From contig NW_027271855.1 of the NCBI RefSeq assembly GCF_040938485.1, positions 1,054,001-1,118,000 of the forward strand: a DNA stretch of 64,000 bases, written 5' to 3'. Position numbers and translations under genes: made by a program. The notes below the pieces were generated by a model that ran no database searches, had not been told where the DNA came from, and worked only from the letters and a program-made list of their open reading frames with translations. Below are positions 29,791-58,984 of this stretch, in pieces; the first letter of the stretch is position 1, and every line of letters starts with the position of its first letter. Origin of the DNA: Diadema antillarum. Taxonomy: Eukaryota.

Positions 29791-30060
29791 NNNNNNNNNN
29801 NNNNNNNNNNNNNNNNNNNNNNNNNNNNNNNNNNNNNNNNNNNNNNNNNNNNNNNNNNNNNNNNNNNNNNNNNNNNNNNNNNNNNNNNNNNNNNNNNNNN
29901 NNNNNNNNNNNNNNNNNNNNNNNNNNNNNNNNNNNNNNNNNNNNNNNNNNNNNNNNNNNNNNNNNNNNNNNNNNNNNNNNNNNNNNNNNNNNNNNNNNNN
30001 NNNNNNNNNNNNNNNNNNNNNNNNNNNNNNNNNNNNNNNNNNNNNNNNNNNNNNNNNNNN
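29791..30060. other. Assembly gap (270 N)
   Basis: N run. Confidence 1.
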
Positions 30061-47655: not shown

Positions 47656-47832
47656 NNNNNNNNNNNNNNNNNNNNNNNNNNNNNNNNNNNNNNNNNNNNN
47701 NNNNNNNNNNNNNNNNNNNNNNNNNNNNNNNNNNNNNNNNNNNNNNNNNNNNNNNNNNNNNNNNNNNNNNNNNNNNNNNNNNNNNNNNNNNNNNNNNNNN
47801 NNNNNNNNNNNNNNNNNNNNNNNNNNNNNNNN
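47656..47832. other. Assembly gap (177 N), preceded by a poly-G run
   Basis: N run. Confidence 1.
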
Positions 47833-52141: not shown

Positions 52142-53541
52142 TCAAAAATCAAACCTCCATCTTTTAAAATGAATGGGGAGCTTATTCCTTTTCTTAGCCA
52201 AGTGGTATTCTATCTCTTTCTGTTTTTGAACAAATGATTTAAACGCATTTAAATTTGGAATGCTGTTTTTGAATTTACAAATAAATGTGAAATATTTTAC
52301 CACTAAGATTAAATACGTTACAAATTTGTCAGATAATACACCAAACAACTTATTGAAATTAGTAAAATTAAAATTGAAATCATACTTTTACACTAATATA
52401 CCTCGTAAAAGTTCCCAAATTGGAGTGACCTCACATTCGCAAAATAAATGAATTATTGTCTCTTCAAATTTGTCACAAAAAGAACAGTTTGGAGAATCTC
52501 TTCTTTTGATCTTATACGTTTAGGGCTATTGTTTTATGAAATATTTTATAATAAAATGAGCATAGTTTAGTATCAATAGTGTATGTAAAATTTGTAACAT
52601 GTACTTTTTCCCAGTCCAAATTGACCAGTACTAAAACCTTGTTATCCCAATATTCATAACGCTTGTTGGGAACTTGTTTGGAGTTCAGCAAATTGTATGC
52701 AAGACTGGGTATTTTCTTTGAACTCTTCAACTTAACAATGAGAGCTTCATGTACATCAACATCTTGCATATTGGGATTTTCCTGCCAGTCATTTGGAATA
52801 TTTTTTATCAAAAAATTATACTTTCTTCTGTGTGACTGAGGGATATCAAAATCAAGGACTAATTCTTCAAATAATTTATGGCCAGGAAAGGGAGGATTCA
52901 GCAAATCAGATATTACAGATACATTCTTTATATTCCACAACTCATAATAAAAATACTTCTTAGATTTTGAATGTATCAATCGATTAAACCACAATGACTG
53001 ACATGCACCAATTTCTGAGAATTTGCATTGAAATTGCTCTACAGTTGCATACTCCCTGTACATGTACCAAGTACGCAAGGAATCTGCTAACTGTGTATTA
53101 TCTAAAGAGTTTAAGATTTTTTCAGGTGCATATGATTTCCAAAGTATATTAGGGTCTATATGATATTTTTCCAAAACTGATGATTCAATCGATTTCCAAA
53201 CAGATTCGAAGCTATCATCAAGTAAACATTTCACCCATGTCATTTTTTGAGCAAGAGCAAAAGCGTAAGGGTCGGTCATCTTGAGACCACATTGAGCATA
53301 ATCATTGCACATAAATGTCCTTTTGACCCTATCTTGGCCACCACTCCAAATCAACCTAAAAAACAGCTTATTTAACTCATTAAAAAATGTTGTGGTATCT
53401 TGATACTTAAAACAGAAAAGAGATATAACAACTGTGGGAGAACAAGAGACTTAATTACACAAATTTTACCAATTAAAGAGAGAGATCTCATTCTCCAGCA
53501 GTTGATAGTCTGAGTAATGCCTTTTAATTTTTCCTTATAAT
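52142..53541 (-). mobile_element. 5'-truncated, frameshifted L1/Tx1-clade LINE ORF2 remnant (post-RT C-terminal region)
   Basis: Three frames give CWRMRSLSLIGKICVIKSLVLPQLLYLFSVL, IWSGGQDRVKR…GLKM…AQKMTWVKCLL…LWFN…FYYKIFHK and EYHLAKKRNKLPIHFKRW*, all typical L1/Tx1 ORF2 C-terminal motifs. Confidence 0.85.
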
Positions 53542-54960: not shown

Positions 54961-55089
54961 AACACACACACACACACACACACACACATTCTGCAGCCTG
55001 CGCACATCTGACAAGCAGACAAAAACACAGAAAATATTTTTCTATGTATTTTAAAGAAGTCACTTACACTTCATTTTCCTTCTTTGTAC

Positions 55090-55129
<40 letters not shown>
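54961..55129. repeat. (CA)n at 54961-54988 and (CT)n at 55094-55129
   Basis: Visible directly. Confidence 0.9.
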
Positions 55130-55133
<4 letters not shown>

Positions 55134-55294
55134 CTTCTCATGCAAACTTACCATGTCTTAACTAGTGTTTTGGTTCATACTGTCAATGCATTGCTTAACT
55201 ATTTATCAGCTTCATTTAAAAAAAAGGCTAACTCTTGCAGTTTTGATAGGTATGATTACAAGGACAGCAGGCTTAGAGGAATGCATAAGAGAAA

Positions 55295-57886
55295 TATAAT
55301 CATTTTCTGAAAATTTTATTTAGTATAAAACAGCAACAAGTTGGTGTTCATAGGAACAACTGTACACAAGTAATTACATTGCTGAAAAGAAAAAGAAACT
55401 TTTGAACATATTAGTGGGATTGTCAGTCATGTCTGGACATACAGCATTGAGTAAATTGTACTTAAGGGCCTGACTTTTTACCAGACTGTAAGCCAAAAAC
55501 CATACGGTGCTTGTTTTATTTTCAAAGTTCACTCATTTGTTTTATTGGTTTATTAATCAGTTACACCCATTTATCACTGATCATGGATATTGAACAGGTT
55601 GAGTAATGTGTTGACAGGCATCCTTGTTATAACTCCAAAGTAAAATTTGAATTCTTTGTTGAAATATGTAACCTATGAAATCACACAAATTACATGTATA
55701 TGACATAAATCTACAGTTTTCTACATGTGCAAACTCTTAACTGCTCTCTATGTACACATGAAAACACTGTAAAAGGCACTTAAATATTTCTATAAAATAA
55801 ACCAACTTTATCATATTTACAAGTTGCTATGAAGGTACAAATATCACTTGGCATAAAATATTTAGTTAAGACACAATCTTAAATATCTAAAGGAATCTTA
55901 CCGCATGACAGAAAGACGGAATATTATCAATGATTTCTGAATAAATCTGAATACACAAACCACACTTTGCAGGAAGAGAATTGCCATTCCAAGGCACAGA
56001 ACAGGAAGCATCTACATTTGCCCATGTAAGGCAATCAAGGCTATTCACATCAAACAGTTTTCAAGAAAACCCTTTTGTTTCATCCATAGTTTGTAAATAT
56101 GTGATGACAGAACTGGAATGAAAACAAAAAGAGGCACAAGGAATGTTATTTCTGTTATTAATTCGATAAATAAACAATCAGTACATTTTGAAAAGAGATT
56201 AAAACTCTAAGGTGAAAATATTTGATAGAATTATGCCAATAAATATCCAAGAGGAACTCATTCCCATGAATTAAAGTTTGGGGGTTTACCTGCCTCACTT
56301 CCTCAGAACTAATCTTTAAAAAAAAGTTTTGCAAAGGGCTGAAGTGAATGATGATGAAAGGCACCAAGTACTGTCATAACTTGCGATGGCTAGTACTGAT
56401 CAACAGTTCTGTCATCTTCCCACCAATCAAATTGAATTCAAAGCATAAAACTGTAGACTTCCTTATGATACAGAGAGTGCGCCTTGAAATACATGCAGAT
56501 GAATGACATGTGTATTGCTGGGTATCCTGCAGCTCCTGAAATGGAACTCTTTTATGTACTTTTGTTAAACCATATTTTTTTTTTATAAGGCAATTGAGGG
56601 AAGAGAGAAAGAATAACTTCCTAAGGAAGTCAACTTCTTCCTCCTCCCCTTCTCTCTGTCTCTCCTCTCAGCTAACCCCTTTTTCAACCATCGTTCATGA
56701 ATGAGAAAGAGAAAGATAGAGAGAGAGAGGGTTGAATATCAACGCTGTGTGGTCTAATTTCGACAAATTACACAGCAGAGAGAAACACACTGAACTAAAA
56801 TCTTGATGACCTATTGCCCTTTGAAGCCAGGCTAATGTTTCCCAGCTGCCCATGTGAGAAATATAAAAACTGAATATTATTAATACTCTGCTCCAGCCCT
56901 CTGTATCTTGTCAACTTAAGTGACAAACACAGGCAGAGTACTTGCTTTCAAAGCCAGAAAGCTGCAGTACTGGGATGGTAAATACTGTATATACAGAGCT
57001 AGGCACTTAAAATAAAGGCAATAATATCAAGCTCCATCACTATTTTTGGAGGTAATTGTGAATTTTTGAGAATGCCCAACCCTGGGGTGTGGATGTTTCT
57101 CTTACTGTCTATCAAGAATCCCGACAACTGCTTCCATTGTCCTTTGTTTTTGTTCTTTTCACTTTTTTTTGGGGGGGGGGGACGGACGGTGGAAATTATG
57201 TTTTTAAGCCACTATGTACTTGGATTTGGTCACATTTCAAGTCAGTTTGAATACTGTACAATTTGGTCCAGTTTCTGTTTATAAAAAGAAAGCCACTCCA
57301 CCCTCTTGAACAGATGCTATGGGGCACAAAGTAGTCTCTGGAATGATTCATTGACATAACTTCTTGAAGATATTAACAAGTGTATTTGCATTTTACGACA
57401 GTACAAAACGTTTACAGGCACAAACTTTAATGGCAGCATTGCTGTATTTCTTACGTGTGGTCTTTATGGACACTTCAAAACACTTTAGAGTGAAAAATAT
57501 TGGAAAACATGTTTGATTAAACCAAGGATGAGTAAAATGCTACAAAGTTTCCCTTTCAGAGCATGATTAATTGCTTGTTTATGCTTGTAATGTAGTTTGA
57601 TTACTACAGTACTTTGATTTGTGAGGTTTTAATGGCTCACACTGAGATCAAATGCGTATATGTCTGAAATGCCAATCCACAGTTCTGTTGATGTTTAAGC
57701 CATTTACCTGCTGACATGTTGATCAGATGGCGCTAGCTTTAGGAGTTACATAAATCACACATCACTTCAGAACTGAACTATCTAAACTTGAGTATTTGCT
57801 CTGCACTCATCAAGTGCTGTTAAATCGTGAAAACACGGCTGTATTTTAAAGTGTTTGTGTTTATAGTCCAGTGGAGTTTAGTTCAT
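55295..57886 (-). other. SoxE: Putative SoxE 3'UTR (~2.6 kb)
   Basis: TE-free AU-rich sequence after the stop codon, dense in miRNA seed matches and Pumilio elements down to 55749. AATAAA candidates at 55549-55554, 55540-55545, 55515-55520 and 55315-55320. The 3' end is inferred. Confidence 0.5.
55315..55320 (-). terminator. Candidate polyadenylation signal AATAAA
   Basis: Plus-strand TTTATT, followed on the minus strand by U-rich sequence. One of several candidates. Confidence 0.3.
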
Positions 57887-58132
57887 TCAAGACCGCACTG
57901 CACTTGCATAAGCCTCCCATGGTCTGGGGTCTTGGAGCATTGTTGGTTCACTGAGATCTACATAAGCTGGAGACCGCTGGGGAGAAGTGTGGGGGTACTG
58001 GTAGGCAGGGGGCATGCCACTGGCAGGGGTGGAAGGGTTTGCATTGTAGAAGTCCATTTGTGCCCTGGGAGAATGTTGCTGCTGAGGGAAATCACATTGG
58101 GAGGCTTGTCGGAAGTCATATGGTTGTTGTTG
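57887..58132 (-). CDS. SoxE: Probable true SoxE C-terminus in a shifted frame ([81 protein letters not shown])
   Basis: 81 open codons ending in TGA at 57889-57887. The frame continues the polyQ and has the Pro/Gln/Ser/Tyr-rich composition and terminal W-E motif typical of SoxE transactivation tails. It needs one extra base between 58133 and 58132 (repaired protein 494 aa). Confidence 0.75.
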
Positions 58133-58984
58133 TGCTGCTGCTGCTGCTGCTGCTGCTGTTGCTGTTGTTGTTGCTGCACTTGTTGCATGGCAGCAAAGTT
58201 GAATGCCTGCATCTGATGGTGCTGTGTTGATGGATATTGTGGTGGTGGGGACATCATGTCTTGCTCAAGCTTTGAATTCACTGACACATTGTCCAGAATG
58301 GTTGCCTGCAAGGGGCTGGTATTACCACCAGTAGCCAGGGGCCTTCCAAGCCACTGCCCCCTTGCATTACCACTCTGTGTACTCACATTGATGTTGGCCA
58401 TGTCATAACTACTGTTGGTAGTAAAGGGAGGCATTTGGCAGGTCTGTCTGATCATACTCTGCTGACAAGGCATGGTGTGTGAAGCAGTCACGCTGGCAAT
58501 CGTTTGCACAATGTACTGGTCAAGTTCTTCAGAAGAAATCTCCTCCATTCCCATCATCTCACTGCCAAAGTCACGCACATCCACCCCAGCAAAGTCCATG
58601 GGCATCTCGGTCTTCACCTTCAGGGAGTACTTCTGCCGCTTTGTTGGACGAGTGCAGTCAGCATCATTCTTGGGTGTGGTTGGTGGAGTGGGTGGTCCCT
58701 GTCCAACTGCCCCTCCCATCATCATCCCCAGCTTGTCGGTTCTCTCCTTCAGACTGGCGTCTGTGATCTCCTCCCCAACCATGGTGCTGAGCAAGGCCTT
58801 GGTCGAGACCTGGTGGGAGGGGTCAGGCGAGGGGACTGGACGGTTGGGTGGAGCCTTTTTGTTATTGTCATTCTTGTTGCGGCGACGGGGCTGGTACTTG
58901 TAGTCTGGGTAGTCTTTCTTGTGCTGCTGCCTGAGACGCTCAGCCTCTTCAATGAATGGTTGTTTCTCTTTGTCAGACAACAGC
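57958..58984 (-). CDS. SoxE: SoxE coding exon 2 as assembled (rest of HMG box, [10 protein letters not shown]2/TAM-like region, polyQ). The frame after ~58133 is probably wrong
   Basis: Acceptor TTTTCTCCTGCAG|G completes the Arg codon, giving [37 protein letters not shown]. Also [16 protein letters not shown] (SUMO-type motif) and [30 protein letters not shown]. The spliced product as assembled is 470 aa. Confidence 0.9.
58124..58176 (-). repeat. CAG/CAA trinucleotide repeat encoding polyQ in SoxE
   Basis: Plus-strand (CTG)n/(TTG)n tract, visible directly. Confidence 0.95.

Follow-up and report, generated by a model that had tools for sequence, protein, structure and literature searches.

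The SoxE gene of the sea urchin Diadema antillarum, as assembled, changes reading frame inside a glutamine-coding repeat of its last exon. The question raised by this locus is whether the break belongs to the animal or to the assembly, and which of the two possible C-termini is the genuine one. We examined it in the window, by which we mean the whole 64,000-nucleotide stretch of DNA that was analysed; the gene lies on its minus strand.

Structure of the SoxE gene

SoxE consists of two coding exons with a single intron between them. The coding part of exon 1 (62259-61874, minus strand) was delimited by sequence reading and Pfam. It starts with the ATG at 62259, begins MSSPESLE and encodes the Sox_N/dimerisation region, followed by 40 residues from the beginning of the HMG box. 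Exon 1 ends with ...LGKLW plus AG, which is followed by the donor GTGAGT at 61873-61868 (AG/GTGAGT). The intron (58985-61873, minus strand, 2889 nt, GT...AG, phase 2) splits the HMG box between ...LGKLWR and LLSDKEK, and the orthologous proteins are continuous over that junction. Exon 2 starts at 58984, after the acceptor ...CTGCAG, by completing the arginine codon. Its frame-0 part (58135-58984, minus strand), recognised by identity to orthologues, pN and Pfam, comprises the remaining HMG box, the linker, the TAM/K2 motif EELDQYI and the glutamine tract as far as the last CAG. The start of the 3′UTR (57553-57886, minus strand) was read from contigs of a small sequencing run, X9, which is possibly RNA. 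Near the acceptor, at 59115-59155 (minus strand), the intron contains a C run and then an A run with (TAA)n, where assembly errors may be expected as well.

Judged by its sequence, the gene is a SoxE gene in all the features that we tested, the C-terminal one being present in the +1 frame only. The Sox-type HMG box was recognised by Pfam HMG_box in both exons, with an E-value of 2.8e-13 in exon 1 (profile positions 1-40) and 1.5e-4 at the start of exon 2 (profile positions 42-69; exon 2 residues 1-28). Directly N-terminal of it lies Sox_N (PF12444; E 8.3e-13, 49.6 bits against a cut-off of 23.1). The sequence EELDQYI in the exon 2 translation fits E-phi-[D/E]-Q-Y-phi, the motif of the SOXE middle activation domain (PMC6649842). 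In a protein search with the exon 2 frame, the closest named proteins were Lytechinus variegatus SoxE, Paracentrotus lividus Sox9 and Peronella Sox9, and the next-ranked after the echinoid proteins were asteroid and holothurian SoxE and vertebrate SOX8/9/10.

The echinoid SoxE or "Sox9" proteins (L. variegatus P0002, P. lividus P0003 and Peronella japonica P0004) display the same order of Sox_N, HMG box and TAM-like motif. Exon 2 is 78-82 % identical to the proteins of the two camarodonts and 69 % identical to that of Peronella. The window protein is about equidistant (78-80 % identity) from the two camarodont proteins, which look much closer to each other.

Elsewhere in the window, we noticed a 312-codon stop-free frame at 52515-53450 (minus strand) with no Pfam match at E 0.01; Pfam recognised nothing in the three long open frames searched besides SoxE. 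Since there are no long open frames elsewhere in the window besides SoxE and the frame at 52515-53450, SoxE lies in a gene-poor region. There are two runs of N, at 29791-30060 (270 letters) and 47656-47832 (177 letters). These would be deliberate masks if the assembly is the gap-free one described for this species (PMC13511894).

The frame break in the glutamine tract

The CAG/CAA glutamine-coding tract (58124-58176, minus strand) was located by direct reading and by Tandem Repeats Finder, which reported a period-3 array of 15 copies within it. The tract reads CAG CAA CAA CAA CAG CAA (CAG)8, then CA, then (CAA)3, and the next codons are CCA TAT GAC TTC. Translated in frame 0, the same strand reads GTG CAG CAA CAA CAA CAG CAA (CAG)8 CAC AAC AAC AAC CAT ATG ACT TCC. 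The as-assembled sequence across 58120-58160 includes ...CAGCAGCACAACAACAACC....

The (CAG)8 run codes for glutamine in frame 0 only and the three CAA do so in frame +1 only; the two phases meet at 58134-58133. Here stands the stray dinucleotide CA (58133-58134, minus strand), which we identified as the break by direct reading and from the frames of the orthologues. The latter fix the frame on both sides, as frame 0 upstream to AAMQQ (58180; AFxFAAMQQ) and as frame +1 downstream from QQPYDF. Because the two glutamine phases meet at this CA, the fault lies there and amounts to either one missing base or two extra ones. Up to the frame-0 stop the coding sequence measures 1410 nt, or 470 codons; up to the stop of the +1 frame it measures 1481 nt, or 494 codons minus one base. 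The preliminary description had quoted the tract sequence, its coordinates and both protein lengths (470 and 494 aa), and our direct reading of the minus strand agreed with it on each of these.

The tract encodes about 17-20 glutamines and is both longer and purer than in five echinoid relatives (Lytechinus, Paracentrotus, Peronella and two contig-derived proteins), which have 5-10 mixed Q/E/P/A/H/T residues at this place. Compared with the echinoid SoxE proteins, the window alone has this longer pure-Q tract and, as assembled, the frame break. The mammalian SOX9 PQA domain occupies the same place between TAM and TAC, is also of low complexity and Q-rich, and varies in length between lineages (PMC6649842), whereas the window tract is pure Q. 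The pure-Q tract is probably an independent expansion relative to the mammalian PQA stretch.

The two alternative C-termini

From 58132, the +1 frame starts QQQPYDFRQ and ends ...AVRS; it comprises 81 codons plus the TGA at 57889-57887 (together 57887-58132, minus strand). The tail in frame 0, as assembled and as obtained by translation, spans 57958-58134 (minus strand), has 58 aa plus TAG (57960-57958), starts HNNNH and ends ...LQLM. The two tails gave opposite results in BLASTP. The +1 tail matched L. variegatus SoxE, a protein of 499 aa, with an E-value of 1e-27 and covered its last 81 residues to the final residue. The frame-0 tail recovered spurious matches only, the best one (E 0.04) to an unrelated N-terminal stretch, and is without relatives. 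The earlier proposal that a one-base break in the polyQ tract hides the SoxE C-terminus was thus borne out.

The same picture was obtained with the whole of exon 2. A search with its frame-0 translation gave orthologues with 69-80 % identity, but query coverage reached only 77-81 % (58 % for one contig-derived protein without its N-terminus). The shortfall arises because the orthologues, after ...MQAFHFAAMQQ and a short Q-rich stretch, go on as QPYDFRQ(A)..., which is the window's +1 frame. They end in (Y/F)VDL..RPWDS(F/Y)..VRS and a stop. Once the +1 frame is used, the window has the same C-terminal tail as the echinoid SoxE proteins, with 74-77 % identity to Lytechinus, Paracentrotus, Peronella and the two contig-derived proteins. 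Alignment to echinoderm SoxE C-termini, the check suggested beforehand, matched the +1 tail and failed to match the frame-0 tail. We also looked for orthologues ending in the HNNNH...LQLM frame, and neither these nor any other protein carrying the frame-0 tail was present in the protein collection searched.

The tail was further aligned with sea-star, sea-cucumber and vertebrate SOX9/SOX10 proteins. One tryptophan (W72) is invariant in this alignment, and the tails share the ending ...Y..(S/T)R(P/S). The C-terminal region ...W(E/D)...Y...(S/T)R(P/S) is present in the +1 frame and absent in the assembled frame. It is this tryptophan and this ending that the +1 tail has in common with the vertebrate SOX9/SOX10 TAC; identity to the vertebrate TAC is only 22-25 %. 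The +1 tail is the orthologous SoxE C-terminus and the predicted C-terminal transactivation region. Since the conserved tail lies in the +1 frame, the expectation that automated annotation would give the wrong C-terminus also proved correct.

The DNA of relatives is consistent in this respect, as the exon forms one open frame through the tract region in all three relatives compared: the L. variegatus chromosome (L003), an ENA contig with both exons (L001) and a Logan contig (L002). In two public gene calls, P0001 (L002 1130-2233) and P0005 (L001 3001-4041), the TGA stop after ...VRS is read as W (VRSWTN...). These calls come from a TGA-recoding model applied to animal DNA, and neither locus translates to the query under the standard stop.

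Selection on the hidden tail and age of the break

We compared regions of exon 2 in codon alignments with the same three relatives (L001-L003). In the 81 codons of the +1 tail, protein identity was 76-77 %, pN 0.12-0.13 and pS 0.65-0.74. The corresponding values for about 280 codons of the upstream exon were 81-82 %, 0.10-0.11 and 0.73-0.82. Synonymous sites are saturated, and the replacement sites of the tail are constrained like those in the rest of the exon. The frame-0 tail gave a nominal "identity" of 19-22 % and a pN of about 0.56. None of the 81 codons of the +1 tail is a stop, and its stop is at the orthologous position. This intact and constrained tail must have been under selection until essentially the present, and with the same purifying selection acting on it as on the upstream exon, the break is either spurious or of very recent origin. 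A long-standing frameshift is excluded by the open, constrained +1 tail with its orthologous stop.

One replacement polymorphism was observed within the hidden tail. At 57928, two sequencing runs (X2 and X9, see below) read A where the window has G (plus strand), which changes Pro (QDPRPW) to Ser in the +1 tail. The orthologues have Ser at this position in four of five echinoids (ESRPW) and Ala in the fifth.

These data bear on the idea that the truncation is fixed in the species, so that the C-terminal activation region has recently been lost and the 470-aa protein is the normal one. The tail shows no decay: all 81 codons are open, the stop is orthologous and pN equals that of the upstream exon. 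The variant at 57928 also speaks against it, as it gives the residue found in most of the echinoid orthologues. Nothing specific speaks in favour of a fixed truncation, and we consider it very unlikely.

Test of splicing across the tract

The preliminary description also raised a cryptic 98-nt GT-AG intron (58179-58082, minus strand) as a way to restore the frame. Such a GT...AG pair does exist; its length of 98 is 2 mod 3, the pyrimidine tract is fair, and taking the stretch out leaves the frame open as far as ...AVRS. Lost with it, however, would be the Q tract and the conserved PYDFRQ...(E/D)(Y/F)P block, which is kept in all echinoids compared and partly in sea stars. The donor (CAA/GTGCAG) is weak, and the donor GT, which lies in a GTG (Val) codon in the window, is absent in the three relatives: L001-L003 have GCC or GCT (Ala) there, so GC in place of GT, and the stretch is plain coding sequence in them. 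We rejected this intron.

To widen the search, we listed, within 58260-57990, every GT/GC-AG pair of 20-250 nt that on excision brings the frame back to ...AVRS. Of the 51 pairs obtained, not one keeps all three conserved blocks (including QMDFYNAN). In every pair from the only GT of the tract to an AG in the CAG run, the length is divisible by three. No joints were seen in the contigs compared, among which those of the possible-RNA run X9 cover 57553-57963 and 58271-58463. Splicing, as predicted from these pairs, cannot yield an orthologue-like protein, and the chance that the 98-nt intron, another small intron or an exitron restores the frame seems to us extremely small.

Sequencing runs around the break

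Logan contigs of four runs (X1, X2, X3 and X9) were compared with the window over 57300-59100, outside the repeat at 58118-58182. X1 and X2 are from the same organism as the window and from separate studies, with shares of 0.94 and 0.89; X3 is partial. Further runs were from a close relative of the window species ("organism B"), and small shares were also seen in coral and marine metagenome runs. X1 equals the window at every base compared (about 1.8 kb), and X2 differs from it at four places in 1.8 kb. X3 continues unspliced from the exon into the intron and thus represents DNA or unspliced RNA. The contigs of X9 are confined to 57553-57963 and 58271-58463.

Within the tract, the contigs of both X1 and X2 stop, 35 letters in from the 3′ side in both runs and 39 and 45 letters in from the 5′ side, and none of them bridges it. 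This fits a tract that is variable in length or hard to assemble. Simple models with CAG-number variation or with a one-base variant were tried and failed to reproduce the overhangs of 35, 39 and 45 letters.

Two features of the contigs lie away from the tract. X1 contigs abut with a single uncovered base at 57491 and at 58849, and following the usual picture in k-mer graphs, such one-base holes are typically heterozygous SNPs. X1 may be the source animal of the assembly. At 57963, a low-depth X9 contig departs from the window with 10 unmatched letters (CCTCCTTCCC, plus strand). There is no splice signal at that place, and the sole near match in 55000-63000, at 56640 and with one mismatch, lies on the other strand; the departure is probably a chimeric contig end.

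We also searched for same-species fragments that span the tract. A protein search for same-species proteins of 45-143 aa matching the 81-aa +1 tail gave none. Exact look-ups of the three products expected from window-identical Logan contigs found none on record, and exact flanks with a variable gap had no matches in JGI metagenomes. The protein collection searched contained no proteins more than 80 % identical to the exon 2 frame, which means that this species and its close relative "organism B" are both missing from it.

Origin of the frame break

We infer that the frame break is probably an assembly or consensus error in an otherwise ordinary, functional SoxE gene, which is also the option that the preliminary description had favoured. 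The error would be located at the (CAG)8/(CAA)3 junction, 58134-58133, where one base was lost or two were gained, and would have arisen during consensus building or polishing over a length-variable, low-complexity tract. The true gene would then read through as ...AAMQQVQ(n)PYDFRQ..., giving an intact protein of about 493-494 aa with all four SoxE parts, namely the dimerisation region, the HMG box, the EELDQYI motif and the C-terminal activation region.

Several observations point in this direction. The break is at a low-complexity site and the frame downstream of it is intact and conserved, as is expected of an artefact. When replication slips on a trinucleotide tract, bases are gained or lost in multiples of three and not singly. 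Most of the errors that remain in long-read assemblies are indels, located in tandem repeats and homopolymers (PMC12212083), and such errors look much like the present case, with a single-base indel, clean surroundings and a false frameshift in a conserved gene (PMC12212083). The D. antillarum assembly was produced with hifiasm from 28x HiFi data of one animal; Nanopore reads from a further two individuals served to patch it, and Racon was run with MiSeq short reads for polishing (PMC13511894). Its Merqury QV is 44.5, about 1 error per 28 kb (PMC13511894), so about two base errors are to be expected in the 64-kb window. The heterozygosity is 2.52 % and the 1.75-Gb assembly, which has no gaps, largely keeps both haplotypes (PMC13511894).

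The main rival to an assembly error is a real allele, that is, a 1-bp deletion or 2-bp insertion in the tract, carried by the sequenced haplotype or by part of the population. Its product, of 470 aa, would keep the DNA-binding, dimerisation and middle activation parts of SoxE and end in a nonsense tail of 58 aa where the C-terminal activation region belongs. The premature frame-0 stop (57960-57958) falls within the last exon, and by the rule in PMC7756068 the transcript is therefore expected to avoid nonsense-mediated decay. By analogy with SOX10 last-exon truncations, the protein would be hypomorphic or dominant-negative.

The good local consensus is in favour of such an allele: the identity of X1 and the four differences of X2 over 1.8 kb outside 58118-58182 indicate that the region is not generally error-ridden, and this counts against an error. 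The intact +1 tail is what one would expect if the allele were young, and a heterozygous indel would also break contigs in the tract, as seen in two samples. Moreover, most frameshifts in good human assemblies are real, with about 78 % of the frameshifted genes in high-quality human HiFi assemblies being due to real variants (PMC12212083). With heterozygosity as high as 2.5 % (PMC13511894), private disruptive alleles are not rare genome-wide.

Against a real allele, a one-base change is unusual for trinucleotide slippage, and SoxE is a single-copy developmental regulator with a tail that shows strong conservation between the classes of echinoderms. When vertebrate SOXE proteins lose the C-terminal activation domain, their activity falls 16- to 658-fold (PMC6649842), and SOX10 last-exon truncations are dominant-negative disease alleles (PMC7756068). 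Judging from these effects, a real allele of such a kind should be rare, and its vertebrate counterparts are dominant disease alleles (PMC6649842, PMC7756068). In the searches made, we found no independent read, contig or protein with the frame-0 tail. We regard a real allele as possible, although rather doubtful.

Recoding is another way in which the DNA could be correct as written. The full-length protein would then arise beside the 470-aa form, either from a +1 shift of the ribosome on the CAG/CAA tract or from slippage during transcription there. The position of the break in a repeat would suit this mechanism, as would the 58 and 81 open codons of the two frames. But the DNA of all the relatives has a single frame, the sequence shows neither an evident +1 shift site of a known kind nor a stimulatory element, and we give recoding scarcely any credence. 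The same applies to its consequence, two SoxE proteins made from a tract that is really one base short, of which the 470-aa form would be a potential competitor at SoxE sites and the full-length form would be made via the +1 shift; this is a most improbable outcome.

Significance for SoxE in echinoids

Sox9/Sox10-type genes act in the coelomic pouch, left-right patterning, muscle and gonad of sea urchins. Most probably, the frame break at this locus does not belong to the biology of the animal. As an error, it would provide a concrete residual base-level error in a coding repeat of the assembly. Taken at face value, the gene model carries a false tail of 58 residues and drops the conserved activation region, which would make comparisons of Sox9/Sox10-type genes misleading.

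If the break is real, it would produce the same kind of protein as the last-exon alleles of campomelic dysplasia and SOX10 PCWH, in which the HMG box, dimerisation region and TAM are kept and TAC is replaced; compared with these SOX9/SOX10 truncating alleles, an artefact is the likelier cause in the window. A real break would constitute a natural invertebrate counterpart of the dominant C-terminal truncations of SOX9/SOX10, in a keystone reef urchin.
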